This document shows positions 1 to 61,675 of a stretch of 64,000 nucleotides of DNA, in pieces. The stretch is from Caecitellus pseudoparvulus. Taxonomy: Eukaryota; Protista; Bigyra: Bicosoecida. Where the stretch lies: positions 186,001 to 250,000 of the forward strand of contig CBFFRQ010000067.1 of the NCBI GenBank assembly GCA_965644315.1, given 5' to 3'. The position numbers were made by a program, and so were the translations under genes. The notes beneath the pieces are model-generated. The model searched no databases. It was not told where the DNA came from and worked only from the letters and a program-made list of their open reading frames with translations. Every line of letters begins with the position of its first letter. Position 1 is the first letter of the stretch.

Positions 1-2420
1 CCAGTGGGCGGGTGGCTCGGCCAGGCGCCGGCGTGTGGCGGCGGGGCACTGCCTGCACTTGGGCTTGGCGGGGCGTTGCCTGTTTTGGCGTGGCCCGGAG
101 GAGGGCACCGCGTGGGTGGAGGGGGGGGTGCTGATCCCAGCAGTCCAGACCCCCCCGAGCGAGAGCTGGACACACTGCTGCCTCGCTCCCTCTCACTGCC
201 TTCTTCAGGCACTTGGTCCAGCAACCCCCCTCCCAGCATCGCCGGGGGGGGCCGAGGTTGGGCAGGTCGAGGGGTGGGCCAGACCCCCCCACTGGGGGCC
301 GCCCCCTGCCCACTGGACATGGGCGCTGGGTGTGACGGCGCCATGGCCCCTGCCAGCCCCGTGGCAGGCGGCGCCCCTTTCACCAGGGCATTGCCCAGTG
401 TCGTAGGGGGTGCTGAAGCTCGTGCCGAGCGGGGATGGGGTGCCGCCTGCGCCTCTGGCCGCCGCCGCAGCATGGGGCCTGACGAGTCCAGGGCGATGCT
501 GCCTCGCATCGGGGGCCGCCCACCACCACCACCACCGCCGCCGCCTTGTCCCCGCAGTCGGATAGCGCTGGCCAAGGACTGCCCCGCAGCAGCCACCGCC
601 GCGCCCAAGTTAGTGCCGTGCTGCAAGCTGTGCATGGACTGGGGCTGGGCGGAGTGGCGGCGGGGGGGCGCCTGGTTGCCGCCCTGCACATCCACCTCCA
701 CAGCGGAGGACAGGCGCCGGTGGTGGGAGGGCTGCAGGGGCACTGATGCGCTGGTGATGGAGTCACGCCCAGCACCCCCCCCTGCCACACGCATAGAGTG
801 GGCGCGAGCTGCAGCGCCAGAACGCAGCAGCTCAGCCATGGATGACGTGGGTGGTGGGGGGTGTGCCCCGCTGGGCGGGGGCGTGGGCTGGCCCCACGAG
901 CCAAGGCTGCGGTCTTGCCAAGCGTGCACACCTCCTGGCGGGCCAGCGTGCCACTCACGGGGAGGGTGCTCAGCGGGCAGCTGGCCTGCCGTCCACATGG
1001 CACTGCCACGGCGCTGGTCCATGGTGGAGTCCACTGAGAAGGCGTAGCTGCCACGCCGTGGGCCCATACCTCCGCCGATCAAGTCAGGGTGCTGTGGAAC
1101 GGGCGGAGTTCGTGGTGGGTTGTGCAGGTGCAAGGCACAGCGTGCACAGGAAGCCAGGGCGCGCTGCCAGCTCAGCTGGCGAGGACAGTACAGTGGCTCA
1201 GTTTGGAAGTTGAGTTCACGCCCCCTTGCGAGGGGTCACACTCGAAAGATGGTTGAAAAAGATCGTCACAGCCGAAACAAGCAGGCAAGGCAGAGAGCAG
1301 CGCAGGTCGGGCAGACGGCAGCGCTCGGTCAGGAAGTTGAGTTCACGCCCCCTTGCGAGGGGTCACACTCGAAAGATGGTTAGGTATGATCTTCATGGCG
1401 CAGGTGCCGCCGAGGCAACACGGGGGGCAACCGCAACGGCCACAGACACAAGTGCAACGGGCAGCTTCGTGGCAGGCCAACGTACTTGAGGTGGGGAATC
1501 TGCCCCGTGGGCAGGCCAACCCTGCTGCACCGTCGGCAGCAGGGAACAAGAGGTGCCCACCTGGACCAGAGCCCCTGTCACGGCATCCAGTGCAAGCAGG
1601 CAGTGCTGCACGTCGGCTTCACGCCGGTCCTGAGGCGGTGCGGAAGTTGGGCGCGCACATTCAGTGCCAGGCGTTGAGGGAGGATGGATGGGCGCGACCA
1701 GGCTCACCTGTACGAGGTTCAGGAGGCTTCGCACTTCCACAGAGTAGTCCAGGGCCCCTTGCAGTTCCTGGGAGCGCGGGGAGGGAGGGAGGTGTGCCGG
1801 GCGCGTGAACTTCAGCCTTGGCTTGAGGCAGTCGGCGCACGCCGCCTTTGCAAGCGTCGAGTGCCGTGGGACGCGACCAGCTCACTCACAGCTGACGCTG
1901 TGGGGGTACTGTTGGACACTGCAGACCATGCCTTGACGACAATGGAGTGGCACTGCTGCAGGGCCTGCACGGCGTGGGAGATCACCGCTGCGCCCTGTGT
2001 CGGAAGGACGTGCGATGGGAAATTGACGGCGTCTGTGCCGGCCTAGGCACCGGGCGCCGCTGGCCTCACATCTGCACTGGAAGCAGCCAGCTGGGACAGT
2101 TTGTCAATGCTGGTGGCCAGGTTCAGGAGAGCAGAGGCGACGGCCACCGTGTGTTCGGCAGCTGACATGCTGCCCAACGGCGCACAGCGTTGCGCACCAA
2201 TGCGCTGCACAGGAGGCAGGCGAGCGCCAGCGGCACGCTGCGCCGGGCAGGGACGTGGCAGTCACTGTTTGTGGGCCTTCAGGAGCTCCTGTGCCGCTGC
2301 GAGCTGGCGGGGGCGCGGGGAGCCCACCAAGGCATGCACAGACTGCCGGACCTGCTGGTGTGCCTAGCGCCGGCGGAGGGGCAGGCGGAAAAGCAGCCTG
2401 CTCACGCGAGCGCGCACCAT
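1..2420 (-). CDS. Multi-exon hypothetical protein, 3' end beyond window start (snoRNA host gene)
   Basis: Short minus-strand exons (AHQQVRQSVHALV..., GAAVISHAVQALQQ..., ELQGALDYSVEVRSLLNLVQ, DRREADVQHCLLALDAVTGALVQ) are bounded by gt..ag. A phase-0 intron at 1560-1092 joins in frame to a long exon (HPDLIGGGMGPRRGSYAFSVDSTMDQ...) that appears open to position 1. The start at 2420 is tentative. Confidence 0.6.
1195..1273 (-). ncRNA. Box C/D snoRNA-like unit B (snR39b/SNORD2-like)
   Basis: Terminal stem GGC...GCC flanks box C-like GTGACGA (1269-1263) and box D CTGA (1201-1198). Same 50-nt core as unit A. Confidence 0.62.
1205..1381. repeat. Perfect 50-bp direct repeat (1205-1254 and 1332-1381) with a 77-bp spacer
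   Basis: ggaagttgagttcacgcccccttgcgaggggtcacactcgaaagatggtt occurs twice. Confidence 0.97.
1329..1396 (-). ncRNA. Box C/D snoRNA-like unit A (snR39b/SNORD2-like)
   Basis: Box C-like ATGAAGA (1396-1390), guide ACCATCTTTCG followed by D'-like GTGA, internal CCCTC-GCAA-GGGGG hairpin, box D CTGA (1332-1329). Intronic and sense to the host gene. Confidence 0.6.
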
Positions 2421-4186: not shown

Positions 4187-7100
4187 CTATGTCCCGGAGC
4201 GACCACGACCCCGACCGCCGCGACCACGGCTGCGACCCCCGCGACCGCGGCTGCGACCTCCCCGACCACGATTCCCGCGACCCCGCCCGCGGCCACGCCC
4301 ACGGCCACTGCGGCCATCAGCACGCACTGCTGAGGAGTGGTCTGTCTCGTACTGGTAGTTGAATGTGAGCTCGTCGCCATCGGCGATGTCCCGTCGCGCG
4401 AAAAATGCAATGCGCCGCTGCCCTTGCAACACCCCCATGATGCGGGCGACGCAGTTGGGGTTGGAGGAGTGGTTCGCGAAACGGATCTTGGACCCCTTCC
4501 GAGCGGCGTCCAGCACTGACAAGTTGCTCAGCTCGAATAAGTAGGACATGTTGAGGCGGTCGTACACGTTGCCGCGTCGGTCGGCTTCGTTCTGTGAGAT
4601 GAGTTCACCACGGTACTCGTACAGCAGGTCGCGCGCACTGGCTGGCTCGTCCAGGAAGGCCCCCCAGCCGTGGATGAAGCTGCGGCCCACCCGCACCCTT
4701 CTGTGCTCGCCTGACATGAGGCGGCGTGCGTCACGCGTCAGCACTGACTCATCGTTCGACACAGCCACCAGCCCCTCCACGGCACCTGACGCGCCGCCAC
4801 CTCGAATGGCGGTGGCGGCGTTGCCTCGCGGCACCAGAGGGCCACTGGTCTGGCGCCGTTTCTGGGCAGGGGGCGGGGGCATGCCTCCTTCACTGCTGCG
4901 GCCTGAGACGCTGTCGCCGCTGGGCAGGGGCGAGGGGGTGGGCGATGGCTCAGGCACGTCGCCGGTGAGGTCCAGTGCGCCGCCTGTGTCGCTGAGTTCA
5001 GGCGTGACACCGCCAGTGTCCACGCCGCCTCCCTCCGCTGCCCGGCTTGCCGCAAGTACTGCCGACACGGCCCGGCGCACGGCTGCGTACTGACTCTGCC
5101 CCGCCACCTCCAGCAATGCGCCCCTCTCCGCGCGGCTGACTCGTGGAAGTGCCGCGAGAACACTGCCGTGCCGGGCGAAATCGTGGCCCAGTAGAGCACA
5201 CACGGCATCCACATCGCCGCCACACAGCCGTGCCAGGCGGGGGATGAGAGTGGCTTGGCGGGGAGTCAGGACGCAGCCACTTGCGTCGCTGCCAGCGCTT
5301 GTAGCAGCCCCAGGCACTCGCATTTCCGCTGCCACGGCACGTGCCATGTCAGCAAGAGCGGCAGCGGTGGTGCCAAAACGCTCACTGGCTGCCGCTGTCG
5401 CTGCTGCCTCGGCGGCGACGGCTTCCGCCACTGGGCTTGGCATGCGGCTGGGGCTGCGGGGGCGTTTTGTGCCGCGAGTCGCTTCCACGTGCAGTGCGCG
5501 GAGGAACTGCTCGGTCTCCCGGGCGAACTTCGTGGATGTGATGCGTTTCCGCGTGGCCTGGTCCGTTTCACGGGGGTGTGGCAGCGCGTGCAGCACGCCG
5601 TGCTGCCTGTCGTCGTACAGCTTGGTCATGGGGCAGAAAATCACGTTGAACGTCTCGTGCGACCCGTCGCCCTCGGCGTGTGACGTGGTCCCGCCACTGA
5701 ACGCTTCTGGTGTGGGTGAGGGGTGAGGCCCCTCGCCCAGGGCATCCAGCACGCCCCGCAGGCGCTGCCGCTCCGCTGCTGCCGTGCGCACGCCCAGGCT
5801 GTCGATGCCCAGCTCGTGAAACGCAGACCAGGGCTGCGCAGAGGGCACCTGTAACGCACCAGAGACGCCACTGGCGGATGCTCTGTGGGGCACTTGAGCA
5901 GCCTCGGCAGAGCCCCACTTCCAGGTGGCAGCGTCGCCCAGGTCGCGAGAGGCCTGTTGAAACGCATCACGCACCTCCTGACTCACGCGCTGTGCCGCGC
6001 CATTGGCCCGCAGCAGGGGGGGCAAGGCAGCACAGGCAGGCACGCCAGGGCGAGCAGACAGCTGCAGCCACGCGGCAGGAGGCAGGAAGGTGGGTGGCTG
6101 CGCCAAGACTCCGACGCGGCAGGAGTCACTGGCAAAGTGCACCTGCCCAGCCGCCAGTGCCCGCAGTAGGCGCAGGGGGTGGTCTGTCGGGAGCAGGTTG
6201 TAGGTTTCGCACAGACGCAGGCGGCGCCGGGCTGCGAGCACGCCCCGCCAACGCTCGAGTAACGCTGCGAGGAGGAGGGGCACGTCTTGCTTGGCCACGA
6301 GAAACGCATCAGGGGCGCCTGCCGGGGAGGCGCGCCCTGACGAGGCAGGCGAGGTGGGGGACTGCTTGGTGCTGGGTGGCGTGCGACCGCCACGAGTGGC
6401 GCGAGAAGGCGCTCTGGGTCGGCTGCGACCCCGGCCGCGACCTCGGCTGCGACCTGCCGGGGCGGACGACTTGGTCGACGCGGTGTCATCCGCCCCCTCC
6501 TCGCCGCCCATTTCCGCCAACGCATCACTGAGCACGACAAAGTCACTGCTGCAGTACGCTGGCCGGGCGGGGATGGCGGCGAGGCAGACTGAGGGGGGGC
6601 CTGCCACGGCACGTGCACCCCCCCTTCCACTGCCGCTGGACCCCCCTCCCGCCTCATCCACACCTGGGAACAGCAGCACACGCAAGAGGGGGTCTGCCGC
6701 GGTGTGCGCCAGCAGACGCAGACACAGCTGTGCCTGTTGCGTGTTCTGCCCCTCTGCCTCCTCCACCGTGAAGGAAACGCCCTCCCGACGAGTCACCCGC
6801 TGGACGGGTTTGAAACGGCTGGTGGCCATGGGGTGGGACGGCGGCTGCGGCGGTTCTGCGAAGCCCAGCATGCGAGAGGCCAGCCGCACCAACTCCGGCA
6901 GCAGGCACTGGTGCAGCGTGGAGCCCATGGTGCCGCTGCGGTGCAGCTTGTCAGTCAGCTGTGACTTCACACTGGCCGCCTGGGGAATGACGTCAGCGGG
7001 CAGAGTGCCAGCTTGGGCGACGGCGCCAGGCGCTGCGGCGAGCACAGTGGCGACCTTAGAGTGCGAGTACCCCGACAGGTCCAGTTCGCGTTCGTCGTCG

Positions 7101-10100
7101 TCGCCGAAATACGGCTTGTAGTGCAGGGTGGTGTCGTCGTCCTGGAAGAAATTTCTCCGCAGACTCACCCAGGCGCTGCGACGCGGCGGTGGCGGAACCA
7201 GCGGCAGCACAGTGGACTGCCACGTGTCCAGGGAATTGCCCACTTCCTCGCGCAAACACCCGCCCACTGCACGCCGCAGGGCGTTGGGAGTCACTGCGCT
7301 GCCTTTGCGCGGCCGCAGGCAGGCCTGCAGGGGGGCCAACGCACGCGCAGTCAGCCACAGCCGCCGCCGGTTCCACAGCATTTTCCGCAGCGCACACCAC
7401 TGTTCCGGGGGCTGCACGCGCTGCACTGCGGCCAACAACGCCAGTTGCAGCGTGAACTGGCGTCGGCGTGTGGGTGTGGCGAGGCTGCGCCACAGACATC
7501 GGGGCGTGCGACCTGCCAGTGATGGGGGCAGGGAAGCATGCTCGTCTGCCGTCGCCACAGCCTCACCCACCATGGCACCCACATCCACGGCCTCCTGGGC
7601 ATCCTCCCCGTCCTCAGAGCTTGAGGCACTGCCGCCGCTCAGAATTGTGGAGCCAGTCTCCGACGCTGGGGGACTAGTGCGGTTGCCGGCTTGCGGGCTG
7701 GAACCGCCCTCTCCGCCGCCACCAGAGCCGCTCGTTGGGCCCTTTCCGCTGCGCCGCCTCCATGCACTGAGAACACCCCCCTCTTGTTCCTCGTCAGCGC
7801 CCTCACTGTCCCCTACCTCGCAGCCACATGCGAGGGCCATGGCTCGGCGTATGGCGGCATCCTGCACCGCTACAATCTCAGCCGCCTCGGCAGAGCTGGT
7901 CGCACGAGAAACGCTCCATGACGGCACGGCCATCACGTGCAAATCAGAGGGCAGCACCGGCGTGGCGAGGTGGGTGCGTGTGACACCCGCCGTGCCTTGC
8001 AGCGCAACGCCCAGTGCCGCGAGCGTTTCGCGTTGTGCGTTGGTGTGCAGGCTGGCCCAAGTGGTGCGCACCGGGTCACTGCGGAGGTGGGTGGGCCCAT
8101 CCTCGCCTGGGCAGGGCAGGGACGCTGATACAGTCACTGTGTCATGTGGCTCCCGCTTCAGGCGCACTGCCGCGGGGGGAGTGGTGCCGGGCTTGGCGTC
8201 GTGAGCAAGAAACGTGCTCACGAACACTGCCATGGGAGGGCTGAGGGGCGGCGTCGTGGGCGCGGTGTCCTGGGCGCTGGACGAGGCGGTGGAGGAGGAG
8301 TCACTGTCGTCGTCGGAGTCACTGCCACTGCTGTCGGAGTCAGCGCCGGAGTCACTGCCGTCCCCCTCATCCCCACCCGCCTGCACCTGCTGTAGTGCAC
8401 CCAACACACCCCCTCGCTGCAGGAGTGCCGTCACGTGAGGGTGCCGCCCGATGGCAGCGCCAAAGTAACTGCTCAGTGCGATGTCCATGCCAGCCACGTC
8501 AGCGGGGTCGGAGCCGCCCAGCAACGCCTGTGTCTCCCGCAGAATGTACCGCGGCATGCTAGCACTGGCAGTCGTGACGACTGGAGTGCCGCGCACTGTG
8601 GCGAAGCTGCCTGTGGAGCGGCCGCTGCCCAGCACAGTCGCGCGCGAACTGCTGTGGCCAGGCGCGCTCCAACGCTGGCTGCGCGCAAACATGGGCCCCG
8701 CCCCACCACCCTTCCGCGGCAGGGGCATAGCGGGACCAAGTGACACTGCCAACACGCGGCGTGCGGCTGCCAGGGCGGGTGTGTGGGTGGAGCCTGCCTC
8801 AGGCAGTACTTCGAGTGCGGTCAAATTCCGCCGTGCAGCAGGCTTGCCCTTCCCTGGCAGCAGGTGACTGCCCCCCAACACGTCCTCACGCAGATCGTGG
8901 CGCAGAGCATATGTCGCAGACTGTGTGCCGCTGGCTCCGGCACAGCGGCATCCCCGCCTTGCACCGCCCCTGGCGAGAGCAGCAGCGCGCGCAAACGCAG
9001 CGAGCAGGCGAGCCGCATGCCGCTGCCACGTTAGCTCAGCGGCACGGGCACCGACGATGCGCCGCAGCAGTCCTGGCAGTGCAGCGCGCAGCTTAGGCAG
9101 GAATGCAGCCGCCACATCCTCTGGCTCGGCGATGGCGGTAGTGCCGTCTGCGGCGGGGGTCGGCCACGGGCCAGAAACGCTCTTGCGCCACGCAGCCATG
9201 TGCTGCGCCAGCGCTTCACCGTAGCGGAGAGAAGCGGAGAATTGAAATGCAGTCAGGGCTGCCAGCAGACTCAGTGCTTGTTTCAACTGGTCAGCTGTGG
9301 GGGGTGGCAGGGCGCTGACAGCGGTGTGCAGAGCAGTATTCCACGCCCCCGCCGCCTGCTGCGTTGGCGAGGCGTGGCGCGTCAACGCAGCAGCGACCAG
9401 CACATGCCCCACGTGACTGGGCATGAGCAGTCGCAGTGGGCGAGGCAGGGCGAGGTATGCGGGTGTGTGCAGGCTGCCTGGCAGCTTCGCAAAGGGGAGG
9501 TGCCCTGTGAGGCGGCGCGTGGCTCGAACATACCCCCGTGCAGCGGAATTCCGCCGCGACGTGCTGGCGACAGAGCCCGCCACACTGGCCGTGGGGGAGG
9601 GGGGTCGAGGGGGGGGCACTCGTTTGGCGGGCCGTGGCTGGGCGGCGGAGGGGGGTTGCCGGCGCTTGCGCCTGCGAGAGGGGGCGGGGCGCGCCTCCGA
9701 TCTGGCATCGCGCGTCTGCCCGCCCTCTGCGACGCCCGCCACACTGCTGCTGTCCCCTTGCGAGTGTGGCGTGCCCGCTGACAGTGCGGAACTTGTGACC
9801 GACGCCGCGTCAGTCGGAACACTGATGGGCGGTGGGGGCGCCATGGCAGGCAGCTGCGCGACTGCCCGCACAGAGGCAATGCTTGGCACGGCGGCGGCCG
9901 AATCCCGCTGCGAGGGGCTGGTCGCAGCGGCCACGGTCGGCACCTGCGACGTGGCGCCAGTGGAGCCGGGCTGGTCGGCTTGGGAAGGTGGCGCGGCGGC
10001 AGCACCCCCCGCCGCTGGTGACGGGTGGGGCGGCAGCATGGCCGGCGACCGCCGCTTGCCCTGCAGGCTGGGGGGGGGTGCATGTCCCACACTACCCCCC

Positions 10101-10648
10101 CCTCCGCTGGTGGAGGGGGGGGGTGCAGTGGGGAGCAGGGCAGGGGGGCGGCTGCGGCCGTGTGGCGAGTGGTGGGGCGCAGAGTGCGTCGCAGGGCCGC
10201 GGCGCTGCACCCCCCACGTCCCCAGCATGCCCAGCCCCGCGGCATTGCCGACAAAGCCGTGGGGGGGGGGTGCCACAACCCTGCCACTGCCAGCGCCGGG
10301 GGGCATGAGGTGGGTGAGAGGGGGCAGGTGTCGGCGGGCACCGTGCCAGTCCACGCCTGACATGTTGGGCGCCAGAGTGTCGCCCCGCATGGACTGGGCC
10401 TGGCCCACGCTCGGGTGGGGGCTGGAACTGGCGGGCATGCCGGGGTTGGGTGCAAATTCCGCAAAGCCCCCCCGCCGCGTCGGCGCGTGGTGCGCCCCCC
10501 CCTGAGACGACAGAAAGTCAAACGTGCTCAGCATTGCAGAGTGCTGCATGCCGCCTTGTCCGTGTCCTGCCTGCGAATGCCCGCGCACGTGGCTGCCGGC
10601 TGGCCCGTGAAAGACGCCGTGCGGCACGCTGCCCTGTCTGTGCTGCAT
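4187..10648 (-). CDS. E(z): Enhancer-of-zeste (EZH/CLF)-like H3K27 methyltransferase, PRC2 catalytic subunit
   Basis: C-terminal SET domain HGWGAF...EYRGELISQNEADRRGNVYD...SYLF...DAARKGSKIRFANHSSNPNC...ELTFNYQY. SAL-like AWVSLRRNFFQDDDTTLHYKPYFGDD and MCSS-like FNVIFCPMTKLYD. First ATG at 10648. Confidence 0.85.
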   Translation of the reverse strand: MQHRQGSVPHGVFHGPAGSHVRGHSQAGHGQGGMQHSAMLSTFDFLSSQGGAHHAPTRRGGFAEFAPNPGMPASSSPHPSVGQAQSMRGDTLAPNMSGVDWHGARRHLPPLTHLMPPGAGSGRVVAPPPHGFVGNAAGLGMLGTWGVQRRGPATHSAPHHSPHGRSRPPALLPTAPPPSTSGGGGSVGHAPPPSLQGKRRSPAMLPPHPSPAAGGAAAAPPSQADQPGSTGATSQVPTVAAATSPSQRDSAAAVPSIASVRAVAQLPAMAPPPPISVPTDAASVTSSALSAGTPHSQGDSSSVAGVAEGGQTRDARSEARPAPSRRRKRRQPPSAAQPRPAKRVPPPRPPSPTASVAGSVASTSRRNSAARGYVRATRRLTGHLPFAKLPGSLHTPAYLALPRPLRLLMPSHVGHVLVAAALTRHASPTQQAAGAWNTALHTAVSALPPPTADQLKQALSLLAALTAFQFSASLRYGEALAQHMAAWRKSVSGPWPTPAADGTTAIAEPEDVAAAFLPKLRAALPGLLRRIVGARAAELTWQRHAARLLAAFARAAALARGGARRGCRCAGASGTQSATYALRHDLREDVLGGSHLLPGKGKPAARRNLTALEVLPEAGSTHTPALAAARRVLAVSLGPAMPLPRKGGGAGPMFARSQRWSAPGHSSSRATVLGSGRSTGSFATVRGTPVVTTASASMPRYILRETQALLGGSDPADVAGMDIALSSYFGAAIGRHPHVTALLQRGGVLGALQQVQAGGDEGDGSDSGADSDSSGSDSDDDSDSSSTASSSAQDTAPTTPPLSPPMAVFVSTFLAHDAKPGTTPPAAVRLKREPHDTVTVSASLPCPGEDGPTHLRSDPVRTTWASLHTNAQRETLAALGVALQGTAGVTRTHLATPVLPSDLHVMAVPSWSVSRATSSAEAAEIVAVQDAAIRRAMALACGCEVGDSEGADEEQEGGVLSAWRRRSGKGPTSGSGGGGEGGSSPQAGNRTSPPASETGSTILSGGSASSSEDGEDAQEAVDVGAMVGEAVATADEHASLPPSLAGRTPRCLWRSLATPTRRRQFTLQLALLAAVQRVQPPEQWCALRKMLWNRRRLWLTARALAPLQACLRPRKGSAVTPNALRRAVGGCLREEVGNSLDTWQSTVLPLVPPPPRRSAWVSLRRNFFQDDDTTLHYKPYFGDDDERELDLSGYSHSKVATVLAAAPGAVAQAGTLPADVIPQAASVKSQLTDKLHRSGTMGSTLHQCLLPELVRLASRMLGFAEPPQPPSHPMATSRFKPVQRVTRREGVSFTVEEAEGQNTQQAQLCLRLLAHTAADPLLRVLLFPGVDEAGGGSSGSGRGGARAVAGPPSVCLAAIPARPAYCSSDFVVLSDALAEMGGEEGADDTASTKSSAPAGRSRGRGRGRSRPRAPSRATRGGRTPPSTKQSPTSPASSGRASPAGAPDAFLVAKQDVPLLLAALLERWRGVLAARRRLRLCETYNLLPTDHPLRLLRALAAGQVHFASDSCRVGVLAQPPTFLPPAAWLQLSARPGVPACAALPPLLRANGAAQRVSQEVRDAFQQASRDLGDAATWKWGSAEAAQVPHRASASGVSGALQVPSAQPWSAFHELGIDSLGVRTAAAERQRLRGVLDALGEGPHPSPTPEAFSGGTTSHAEGDGSHETFNVIFCPMTKLYDDRQHGVLHALPHPRETDQATRKRITSTKFARETEQFLRALHVEATRGTKRPRSPSRMPSPVAEAVAAEAAATAAASERFGTTAAALADMARAVAAEMRVPGAATSAGSDASGCVLTPRQATLIPRLARLCGGDVDAVCALLGHDFARHGSVLAALPRVSRAERGALLEVAGQSQYAAVRRAVSAVLAASRAAEGGGVDTGGVTPELSDTGGALDLTGDVPEPSPTPSPLPSGDSVSGRSSEGGMPPPPAQKRRQTSGPLVPRGNAATAIRGGGASGAVEGLVAVSNDESVLTRDARRLMSGEHRRVRVGRSFIHGWGAFLDEPASARDLLYEYRGELISQNEADRRGNVYDRLNMSYLFELSNLSVLDAARKGSKIRFANHSSNPNCVARIMGVLQGQRRIAFFARRDIADGDELTFNYQYETDHSSAVRADGRSGRGRGRGRGRGNRGRGGRSRGRGGRSRGRGGRGRGRSGT

Positions 10649-11426
10649 GGCGTGTGAGCTCTGCGCAGGGGGCGATTGCGGGGCGACGGCGAGTGCTCCG
10701 GGTGCGAAAATGCAAAAAATGTGGGGATATTTCACGTAGAACAAGCCCCCGTGCTTGCTGGCACGGCTCCTTGTCACTACGGCACAGGAACACTGCCGTG
10801 GCGTGGCGCTGGCAGCATTTGAACCGTGGTGCCAGGAGAGTGCAGATGGCAGATGACGCCCGCCACCGCGGTACCGCGCGCACCACTGTCAAATTCATGC
10901 AAATGCTGGAACTCACAGACTACGTGCGTGTGGCAGCGTGTGCGCCGTCGTTTTCCAACGTGCCTCGTCTGGGGCGAGGCGCAAAGGTGGCAGGGCGTTT
11001 TCTGCCTCACCAGCCACGCGGCAGCTTTGCCTCGCACACACTTGACAGAGGCACGCTGCCAGGCACGACGCTGCACAAGAGCAGCGCAGGGATGCCGGTG
11101 AGGACGCAGGTCGTGGCCTGGACTTTTATTTTGACTCGCCAGCATGAGAGCTGCTTGCAAAAGTCTGCGCCGGCTGGCGTGCTGTTGCTTGGCAGTGGCT
11201 GGAAGCGCTGCAAGCTCGCCTGACGCCGTGCCAGATGCACTTCTGCAGCACAACACAAAGTATGGGGAACGTAGTTCAGCCTCCCTACTCGCCCACGACT
11301 GCACCCCTTGCGCAGCCTTTGACACTCGCCGCGACACCACGTTGCACTTGCGTTGCCGTGCACAGCAACGCAACACGAACCTGCCCCAAGGTCACCCCCT
11401 CACACCGCCGACACGCCGCGCCGAGC

Positions 11427-35207: not shown

Positions 35208-37685
35208 TCACATTTTGCAGCTGTCGATCTCGTACGGCTGGGGGGGCGCGGGGGGGCCGCCTGCATGCAAGCTGGACACCACCACCGCCACATCGGACAA
35301 ACTCACGCCGCCCTGCACGTCCACCACCACCAGCGTGTTTGGCGGGCCATCTGGCGCATGCAAGGCGTCCAGAGGGACGTGGTACAGGCGCTGGGTGAGC
35401 AGGCCAGACCCGTCGTTGCGCAGCACTGACCAGAATGTACCCATGTCCACTCCGTTCACGTACCACACGCCGCGGCGGAACCCTGACAAATCCACCGCAA
35501 CAGAGAACGGAGTGCCGGCCACCGCACCATCGGGGCGGCTTGGCGTGCTGAAGGTCGTGCGGAACCACGTCAGGGGCTGCGACGTGCCGTCTGCAGGCGG
35601 GGGGCCCCATGGCAGAGTCGCAGGTTGTGCGGAATTTGACGAGGCAGCACTTTGTCCGACCAGCCCCTTGCGCTGCGTCCAGGGGCCCAGCAGTGTGCCC
35701 CCGAGCGGGAAGGAAGCGTCACTAATGCCTGTGCTCTGCTTGCCGGCTCCTGACGGGAAGAAGTTGTTGTAGCCCAGGCTCTGGGAGAGAATAGTCAGGC
35801 GTGCCGTGCCGGGAGCGGATGCCGGGCTTGAAGGACAGGGGATGGTGTAGGTCTTGGTGCTGCCGTCGTGTGTGGCGTCGGCCGCCACCCCCACAACGCT
35901 GCCGTTCAGCCACGCAGTGAGTCCGACGCTGCTCCAGGCAGAGACGGTCAGCGGGAAGCCTTCCGATGCTAGCGGCAGAGCCACGTCGACGTCGTACAGC
36001 ATGAAGGCGTTGAACGCCGCATCGCCCAACTGCACGCTGGCGTTGCCTTGCTCAAGGGGTGTGGACGACGTCACATTGGGCAGGGGGGGACCGCCCAGGA
36101 CAGGCTCTTGCCAGGCCTGCCAGGCGCCGAGGCAGTCTGGACATGGCGAGCTGACCCGGTGTGTTGCGGGTGTTGCAACGTCGGCAGTGTCAAACAGGAC
36201 ATTTCCTGAGGCCTCGTCCACCACCAGCACGCTCTGGGGCTGCATGGGGTACTTGCGTCCGCCGTACAACACGTACAGCTCCCCGCCCATGAACTGGTTC
36301 TCCAAGAACACCACGCCCCCGTGGCCCTGTTCAGATGGGTACCGCCAGCCCAGCTGCTGTGTTCCGTTCACGAACGCCTTTCCGTCAAAGTACGGCACTG
36401 TGAACTGCTTCCCGGTCTGGGCAGGGGCTGCCAGCAGCACTGGCGCAATGTGCGCAAGGGTGCTGTGCATGGCAGTGAAGTGGGCAGCCTTGGTGGGGTG
36501 TGGGAGCAGGTCTGGGCAGAGGGGCGCGTCCAGGCTGTACGCATTGGTAATGCCGGCGCCTGCCCAGTGCCCGACGTTGTTCCCGCCGGTCCACATGTAG
36601 TAGTTGACGTGGGAGCCGCCGCGTGCAAACCAGCGCAAGGTGTGGTACGCTTGCAGAGCGGGGGGCACGCCCCACCTGTAGTTGGTGGGCAAGGCTGGGG
36701 ACTCGCCCCAAAGTTGAAACCCGCCCTCATCCTCGGTCCACAGGGGGGGCTGGCTGACACCGATGGCGCCAGACTGGCCATGGCTCTCGATGAAGTCCAC
36801 GCAGTCGAAGCCGTTGCAGGTGTTGATGGTGAGGGGGCTGGAGTTGCCGTTGCACATGAGGATGGGCACCCACACGCCCGCTGACGTCAGCGTGGCATTG
36901 GCCATGCGCCCACACCAGTCCACGTACGCCATGTCGTCGCCGTGCAGCTCGTTCTCCACCTGCACCATGACGATGGGCCCACCCTGTGCGGCGAAGAACG
37001 GCCGCGCAACGTCCACCACCCGCTGGAACCAGCCTTGCATGGCTGCTTGCCAGGGCCCCTCAGAACTCCGCAGGCGCATGCCTGGCTTCAGGCCCAGCCA
37101 CACCGGCACACCACCGTACGTCCACTCAGCGCAGACGTATGGACCGATGCGCAGGTTGACGAAGCTGGGAATGAGGGCGGGGGTCCGGGGCGTGTGAAGG
37201 TGCGGAGGATGAGGCAGAGCACCACACTTGAGCCTCACAGTCCGTGGGACGCAGCCTTTTCCAGGAACAGGGTGAAGTTCCCGCGGCCCTCCCAGTTAAA
37301 AGTGCCCTCCACAGGCTCATGGAAGTTCCAGAACGTGTACCTGCAGTGTGCGGCGGCGCCGTGAGGGCCGAGTCGGCGTGGTGGGCAAGTGCACTGCACA
37401 TGGTTGCCACACGCACACCTCCACCATGTTCAGCCCCGACGCCACCATGTTGGCAAAGACCACGTCCCACTCTTGTACACTCAGCCGAGGCGGGTGCACA
37501 GACCCGCTGAGGAACAGCGAAGGCTGCCCATTCAGCGTGATGGCGCGTGGCGAAAAGTCAACGGTAAATGGCTGGCCCGAGAAGTCCTTGTAGGCAGGGA
37601 AGAAGCTGCTGCCAGCTGCAGCAGTGGACACCGCTGCCAGCACAATGCTGAGCGCTGCGGCGCTCCTTGTGCCTGTGGCTGCCAT
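35208..37685 (-). CDS. Secreted beta-galactosidase, glycoside hydrolase family 35
   Basis: Signal peptide; LFLSGSVHPPR, VFWNFHEP, FVNLRIGPYVCAEWTYGGVPVWL, QGGPIVMVQVENE (acid/base), WTED (nucleophile), NYYMWTGGNN and TQRLYHVP. Confidence 0.93.
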
Positions 37686-59916: not shown

Positions 59917-61675
59917 GCTTGACTGGAGGGGGGAAAGGGAGTCCTACACTGCAGGAGCTGGGTGCTTTGCATTTGGCCCGGGGGTGAGACCTCGCACCCG
60001 GGTCGGCGAGGATTCACGTACTGCGCAGGAAAACGCGACAGATGGAAACCAAGCCCAGTGTAGTAGGAGAAGGAAGTGGGAGGAGGGAGGACTTGGTGCG
60101 CGGAAGTGCAGCAAGCATGGCGCTCGTGGTAAGGCATGGGGGTGTCCGTAGGGGCGCCAGATCGTTGAGCGTAGCGGGAGAAGGACGAGATTATCAATCT
60201 TCCACGCTGTCATGAGCAGCTGATCTGGAGCGAAAAAATGGACCTGTATACATGAACCAAGAAGCGCTCGGGCACTTGTGCCATCATAACACGGGCCAGT
60301 CTGGCCACAACCACGCGAGCTGGACGTGCTAGCACACGATTCTTTTTTTTGGTATGGTTCTTTGGAGTTGATAGCGTTGTTTGTCCAAACGCTCAGACTG
60401 CTTGGTCCCCTCAACCCACCCTGTTTAGTCAGGCAGGCGACGTTCATCTCTCGCAACCCACAGGGACTGGCCCTGTGAGCGCGTCGCATCCCGCCTCAAG
60501 GGACGAAGCTACCGCTCGTCAACACGTTTGGTAAGTTCGTCTTCATTGGAGAAGACAAGAAGGAGGATTCACTATACAGTGATCCTGTTCAAGTATGGTC
60601 TTGCTGTTCGGACGATCAGATGGGGAGGGTGTGGCACGCTGAAAAGCACCCACTGGGAAAGCACAGAGCAGAATCTGGCTCGCAAGAGGTGTGCCGCTGA
60701 AGCTCACTCCATGGACTCGCAGCTCAACATAGAGAGCTTACCATTTGCACACTTCTTCCGTTATTGTTTGTTTCAACATGGCAAAGCTGTGGAGCGAGCC
60801 AGAACGCCGAGAAAAGTTGAGCCCGCACAGAGTTCAGGCAGCTCCGCCCAACGACGCCCACGGCAATGCATGTATTTCCTGGTATGACGCATGCTACTGC
60901 ACGCTTTTTTTGTGTCTCCTTCCTCACTGTGGGGACTTCTGGAAGGTGTGCATTGTTCGACAACCAATTTCCGCACACTCGCCCAATCCTAGCAGCGCAG
61001 CTTTCCGGTCTACACGAGCCTGGCGCGGCGCTTTTCACGCATACTTCCATTGCAGCTTGTTCATTATCATTCCAACCGGTTTCTTGGGCGAAAGTGCATC
61101 TCATTCCCGGATCGCTCATTCTCATCAACTGGTCCTGCTACGCGGTCAACCACACAAATCATTTAAAAATTTAGAAAGCCAGATTACGACATATGCGTCT
61201 ACGTTGCGCCACACTATATTCTCCTCTCGTTTCCCCATCCTTTCAAGCATCCTCACCCCACGCGCTGTTCTGCAAAGCCAAACTTTCAAGCCTTGACAGA
61301 TGGGCAGCAGAGCCGTGCCCAAACATTCTCCGTCCAGTGCGCCAGCTTCTCATGATCCAGTGACACGCGACCCTGACACTCCAGCAAGAAGCAAGCTCAA
61401 CGCCCCATCTCCCTCAGAGCAGCTTCACATCGCTTCCACACCAATTACCGTGCGCGTTCACGCTTGGAGTCCATACTCGCACATCTGCGCTTCGTTAGCG
61501 TCTGCAAAACGCAAACCACAACCCACCTCGACGCGAGAGATCAAACATCTGCACCCCCACCCAGCCACCCACCCACTCCTTCGGCAGCCTATCATCTGGC
61601 GCCCCCGCCCCCCCTTGAAAAGGTCTCCGCTCCGCCTCACCACCTGCGCTGGGTCGTTGAGGCGTCCAACGCAGC

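Follow-up and report, generated by a model that had tools for sequence, protein, structure and literature searches.

Known guides and the locus

In yeast snR39b and vertebrate SNORD2, the guide is located between box C and D', and SNORD2 is hosted in an intron of EIF4A2. SNORD2 is excised from its host intron (PMC11028025), snR39b guides yeast 25S-Gm805 (PMC8053091), and plant snoR39BY guides Arabidopsis 25S-G814 (PMC8053127) and also targets 5.8S G79. The RNAs of the Am807 register (snR39/snR59, U51, snoMe28S-Am982 and ceN109; clan CL00054) have D' two nucleotides earlier, so that their target is an A two positions downstream. When an intron holds two snoRNAs and the spacer between them is not cut, the product can be one composite RNA with snoRNP caps (PMC11028025).

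The window analyzed here comprises 64,000 nucleotides of Caecitellus pseudoparvulus (contig CBFFRQ010000067.1, positions 186,001 to 250,000) and carries two box C/D units on its minus strand at 1195–1401. Most probably, this pair is an ordinary intron-encoded box C/D snoRNA, present in two local copies and functionally orthologous to snR39b, SNORD2, and the D' half of snoR39BY. The LSU target region and the D'+5 nucleotide are those of snR39b and SNORD2 (PMC8053091). The D' guide and its register match the family consensus of RF00055 (SNORD96 family, clan CL00072) and plant snoR39BY, and the G814 target of the latter is common to the window guide (PMC8053127). Unlike snR39b and SNORD2, the locus has two copies per intron, D' GTGA, C' GTGAACT, an A instead of a G at D'-3, and a low-complexity host gene. 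It also lacks, in both copies, the 5.8S Gm75/G79 guide that precedes box D in snoR39BY/SNORD96 and, unlike RF00055 members, scores below the gathering threshold. Two C/D units per intron are likewise found in intronic snoRNA clusters and sno-lncRNAs (PMC11028025), whereas the spacer in the window measures only 59 nt and the units are paralogues with one target.

Architecture of the tandem pair

The units follow each other with an offset of 127 nt, and four CT..AC joints in RNA contigs identify minus as the transcribed strand, in agreement with the first-pass annotation of this DNA. The identical 50-nt core that it had reported was recovered by exact comparison at 1205–1254 and 1332–1381. Each unit consists of a box C variant, a 9-nt spacer, a 14-nt antisense stretch, D' GTGA, a GC-rich hairpin able to close a GCAA loop, C' GTGAACT, a short spacer, and box D CTGA. 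The annotation had already read the box C-like motif, the guide followed by GTGA, the GCAA hairpin, and box D, all of which are present in both units; the C' box, an A-C mismatch at D'-3, and the unequal D-guide lengths were absent from it.

The 5' copy spans 68 nt from box C to box D (1329–1396). Its box C variant is ATGAAGA (1396–1390), and its D' guide (1367–1380) is complementary to the organism's own LSU rRNA. D' (1366–1363), the hairpin, and C' (1346–1340) occupy 1340–1366. Box D (1332–1329) and the 7-nt D spacer before it, whose length does not suffice for a guide, make up 1329–1339. A possible terminal stem GCGC/GCGC lies at 1401–1398 and 1324–1321. Beyond the 59-nt spacer (1270–1328), the 3' copy (1195–1273) is closed by the GGC/GCC terminal stem previously noted for one unit, and measures 72 nt from box C to box D. 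It contains box C GTGACGA (1269–1263), the D' guide (1253–1240), D' (1239–1236), C' (1219–1213), a candidate second (D) guide of 11 nt (1202–1212), and box D CTGA (1201–1198). The deviations of D' GTGA and C' GTGAACT from consensus appear to restore stem-II pairs. The folding energies of the units are ordinary (z = 0.25 and −0.25), as expected for C/D RNAs. Outside the core, identity between the copies is 6–7 of 10 positions around boxes C and D and 1–6 of 10 in the flanks, and the 59-nt spacer has no similarity to the outer flanks beyond that of shuffles (p = 0.6 and 0.9).

One or both copies could be non-functional, either as a pseudogene or as a weak guide. Each box C has one mismatch to consensus, D' is non-canonical, the guide duplex contains a mismatch, and the D spacer of the 5' copy has only 7 nt. 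Yet all four boxes are intact in both copies, the features are conserved in distant relatives, and no other Gm805-register guide was found in the genome. In run X13, which represents a second strain or sample, both cores are present with no differences among those listed; contig pieces covering the cores have 0–1 changes, while adjacent intron letters vary and the surrounding DNA differs at about 2–3% of sites. Loss of function is thus quite unlikely.

Host gene and intron

The pair sits on the sense strand of a spliced intron, as established by RNA joints. Its host gene (minus strand, 1–2395, ATG at 2168) has five exons at about 2395–2070, 1994–1890, 1767–1708, 1629–1486, and from 1091 to past the window start. 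Intron 4 (1092–1485, GT..AG), which holds the pair, is 394 nt long according to joint 1091/1486, which is present in run X1 as well as in run X14. The 469 nt originally proposed have to be corrected accordingly, and the donor assumed for them at 1559 falls within exon 4. For the neighboring introns, the RNA joints give 75, 122, and 78 nt, consistent with the earlier estimate of roughly 60–120 nt; the 78-nt intron 3 contains no snoRNA. The spliced frame comprises 499 codons without a stop and encodes a low-complexity protein, and an exon-by-exon search detected no Pfam family among the exons tested. Contigs of run X1 that contain the intron and span the spacer have a depth of 3, versus 21 for the spliced form, and may represent precursor or DNA.

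Guide, rRNA target, and register

The D' guide forms 11 contiguous Watson-Crick pairs with positions 712–722 of the organism's own LSU rRNA, starting at D'-4; D'-3 forms an A-C mismatch, beyond which two further pairs follow. The nucleotide at D'-5 pairs with G713, which is the position designated by the D'+5 rule. The own LSU reads CCCGAAAGATGG at 710 in all 10 rDNA loci inspected, and the D'+5 position lands on the G of the conserved LSU motif CCCGAAAG, this being G713 in each of the five lineages aligned to the own LSU. By way of the shared motif, G713 is the counterpart of yeast Gm805 and Arabidopsis G814. The suggestion of an LSU guide of the snR39b/SNORD2 type is supported by complementarity to the own LSU at the Gm805-equivalent G, and the proposed register by orthologues that match RF00055 in the identical register. 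The pair has the attributes of predicted box C/D guides: boxes C and D near opposite ends, with spans inside the expected 60–100 nt, D'/C', rRNA complementarity of at least 9–10 nt, and an expressed context.

The mismatch at D'-3 weakens the guide duplex from −24.6 to −17.7 kcal/mol, and the target is flanked by one pair on its 5' side, less than the strict rule of PMC8053127 demands. In human guides whose sites are fully methylated, internal A-C mismatches are rare yet tolerated (PMC5027482); they are also found in Dictyostelium guides (PMC8817022). A perfect target with U for C does not occur in the genome, and all rDNA copies checked are alike. Nine base pairs, including one G-U, between the C'-proximal letters and LSU 685–693 involve the C' box and were taken as chance. 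A divergent SSU rRNA match of 451 bits at G000:C213:27842–29337 (−) is probably organellar or foreign.

The Rfam check of the region had a divided outcome. The window copies reached only 16.2 bits with RF00055, below the gathering score of 43, and 16 bits with ceN109, whereas their relatives reached 31–36 bits with RF00055 in an unchanged register (best E 1.5e-5). A search of the own genome with the RF00055 family found nothing. Matches of fiv_FSE, SAM-IV, and miRNA models at the pair were dismissed as chance. The reading as a Gm805 guide is weakened by the low RF00055 scores, the D'-3 mismatch, and the imperfect box C in both copies. It is favored because the own LSU target is identical in all rDNA copies checked and offers 11 pairs plus two, and because independently found relatives keep box C, guide, D', C', and D while the hairpin changes.

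The antisense stretch of the Am807-register RNAs overlaps the window guide, and their Rfam matches at the pair are weak. If the two letters preceding D' are disregarded, the window guide takes on the Am982/Am807 register, and the unpaired A is kept in the independently found relatives. One RNA might accordingly methylate the equivalents of both Gm805 and Am807 via an extended six-letter D' region; yeast snR48, which methylates two sites one nucleotide apart, provides a precedent (PMC5389607). This appeared plausible at first, as earlier searches had found no Am807 guide, but a mismatch search then gave a dedicated Am807-register C/D candidate, drawn from the matches listed, of which few were inspected. 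It lies at G000:C40 about 208080–208170 (+; L120, L121) in an intron of a ribosomal protein L35-like gene and has box C ATGACGA, an 11-nt guide, D' CTGA, C' GTGATGA, and an A opposite C adjoining D', whereas no clear box D could be assigned to it. As this separate candidate in the intron of another gene makes dual targeting unnecessary, we regard dual targeting as very improbable.

The D spacers were also compared with rRNA. Neither is complementary to the own 5.8S rRNA, and when such a guide, split off from the unit, was sought elsewhere by pattern, the matches were three copies of one repeat with no visible box C. The 11-nt D spacer of the 3' copy forms nine perfect pairs (D-3 to D-11) with both SSU 1316–1324 and LSU 1007–1015, which are the best duplexes in the two rRNAs; in shuffles, at least one such site has a probability of 0.05, and two sites have a probability of 0.002. 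This would allow the 3' copy to act as a double guide that also directs SSU G1318 and/or LSU G1009, with the functions of the copies having diverged, as the 5' copy contains the identical letters with box D 4 nt closer. However, the complementarity was noticed post hoc and amounts to 9 bp only, the D spacers of the relatives differ and match nothing alike, so that the feature is not conserved, and the Arabidopsis list of PMC8053127, mapped by eye, has no counterpart near the SSU site. We therefore consider a double guide possible but doubtful.

Copy number in the genome

The pair had been proposed to belong to an amplified, high-copy, or mobile snoRNA-derived family, together with the suggestion of a similar motif recurring in Cafeteria gene models. 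No named Cafeteria protein was among our protein-search matches. BLAST with the unit detected one locus in the genome. The 13-nt guide pattern, applied to 30.6 Mb, matched only the two copies outside rDNA (control: one match), the pattern of hairpin plus C' had two matches genome-wide with three mismatches allowed, and the pattern of guide plus D' retrieved the two copies and one unrelated match without boxes. A profile built from 10 homologues yielded two matches among 150 candidates scored. A further Gm805-register guide was not found in the genome by these searches. At this sensitivity, the genome yielded no copy besides the window pair, which is not a spreading element. The first-pass annotation had itself named a copy number of two as refuting its amplified-element part, and two is the number returned by BLAST, the three patterns, and the profile.

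Neither a poly(A) tail nor target-site duplications are visible where the units adjoin their flanks, and no direct or inverted repeat flanks the units. A mobile element would account for a 50-nt core occurring twice, for the four copies in one relative, and for homologues of other lineages occupying different host genes. Nevertheless, the genome searches at the sensitivity used yield only the window pair and the extra copies of the relatives all lie within one host gene, which makes such an element extremely improbable. AT-rich repeats on contigs C19, C66, and C149 (L089, L090, L092, L099, and L100) of this 65% GC genome are possibly integrated elements.

Relatives and the similarity of the cores

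Relatives of the locus were located via the neighboring EEP gene, so that the RNA sequence played no part in finding them. The EEP protein is 44–47% identical between the window and the related contigs, the longest of which retains the gene order SNAP, host, EEP, SET, and EF-hand. Three related contigs extend to this place, and in all of them the RNA lies on the strand of the host. Here box C is canonical (TGATGA), as is D' (CTGA), C' (conserved in L025/L026) and the guide including its mismatched A are unchanged, and the hairpin and D spacer differ from the window copies. Given these syntenic orthologues and a guide pattern confined, outside rDNA, to the two copies, the pair is more than chance.

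The related contig L026 has the snoRNA pair in intron 3 and again in intron 4 of a host with a comparable five-exon layout, and thus four copies. Its two-snoRNA cassettes in these consecutive introns (7774–8652, minus strand) are identical at 270 of 274 positions; judged by this identity, the second cassette is a recent copy between introns. Across the relatives, copy numbers range from 1 to 4, with all extra copies confined to the one host gene. In L025, L029, and L026 (8580–8597 and three other copies), box C and guide are separated by a longer stretch, in which 9 nt are complementary to SSU rRNA at the motif targeted by SNORD110-type guides (weak Rfam match, duplex computed); no D box follows, and these 9 nt are absent from the window copies.

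A pattern scan of metagenomes provided more homologues, with 1–2 copies, in other host genes. Since the pattern demanded GAGT, conservation of the mismatch among those matches is by construction, and only L025, L026/L027, and L029 are independent in this respect. Contigs L030 and L033 (71–72% GC) have one copy in an apparent intron, and the lineage of L034 and L050 has two introns, apparently consecutive, with a single copy each; the introns of these contigs were judged by splice signals. In L034 (70–390), L050 (50–450), and L037, the guide is unchanged, box C is RTGATTA, box D is ATGA, and one copy is present per intron of a host gene tentatively read as that of the spindle checkpoint protein MAD1. 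In contigs of 40–47% GC (L031, L032, L035, L036, L045, L048, and L049), box C, guide, and D' CTGA are kept, but a canonical box D is not obvious within 80 nt.

Unit identity is 81–98% within species versus 54–68% between distant lineages. The hairpin varies between lineages yet is identical in the window pair, and the flanks of the pair are unrelated; near-identical cores in unrelated flanks thus likely result from gene conversion or repeated local duplication. Of the recent duplication, conversion, or mobilization initially envisaged, the unrelated flanks make a duplication of the complete cassette unlikely in the window; conversion or a core-only duplication appears to explain the pair better. 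Positional sharing of the unit ends with the second copy of a relative is suggestive only; the 5' copy also shares GCCATGA with it. A more elaborate history is unlikely, namely that of an old tandem whose cores were homogenized by conversion while the ends diverged, in which a lineage-specific second guide of the 3' copy marks one nine-letter motif in both rRNAs and both units possibly form one 200-nt RNA.

Further features of the window

A U3 snoRNA at 60388–60602 (−) scored 69.4 bits, over the Rfam gathering score. An intron-free frame of 2196 codons at 4187–10777 (−), with a SET domain at its end, converges with the EEP gene, the two tails being only 18 nt apart; the arrangement is kept in the relatives. 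A near-identical EEP protein was found in run SRR8404393, which is cited by two Mariana Trench or deep-ocean papers. The GH35 beta-galactosidase at 35208–37238 (−) shares 94% identity with a protein that carries the label Symbiodinium sp. KB8, and we suspect that the window organism contaminates that assembly.

Proposed mechanism and implications

For an ordinary intron-encoded snoRNA in two local copies, the following steps can be envisaged. The host gene is transcribed and spliced, as seen from the RNA joints. Following the known pathway, the 394-nt intron would be debranched, and trimming would then proceed as far as the C/D ends with their bound proteins. Freeing two RNAs of about 70 nt would need a cut in the 59-nt spacer; if uncut, the spacer would leave a 200-nt RNA with snoRNP caps at both ends. 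The D' guide, with its observed complementarity, would pair with LSU 712–722, and fibrillarin would methylate G713, which lies five nucleotides from D', on its ribose. The two copies may serve as dosage or back-up copies, and their cores would be kept alike by gene conversion or be re-duplicated locally rather than belong to a mobile family.

The pair is of an ordinary kind, an added member of the known Gm805-guide family in two local copies. Its value lies mainly in annotation, as it provides a predicted Gm805 guide for a protist lineage with poorly annotated snoRNAs, and Rfam at its thresholds misses this guide. The window guide offers a natural test of the tolerance of an A-C mismatch three positions from D'. 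The locus also represents a compact case of snoRNA copies that appear to be homogenized and copied between neighboring introns of one host.
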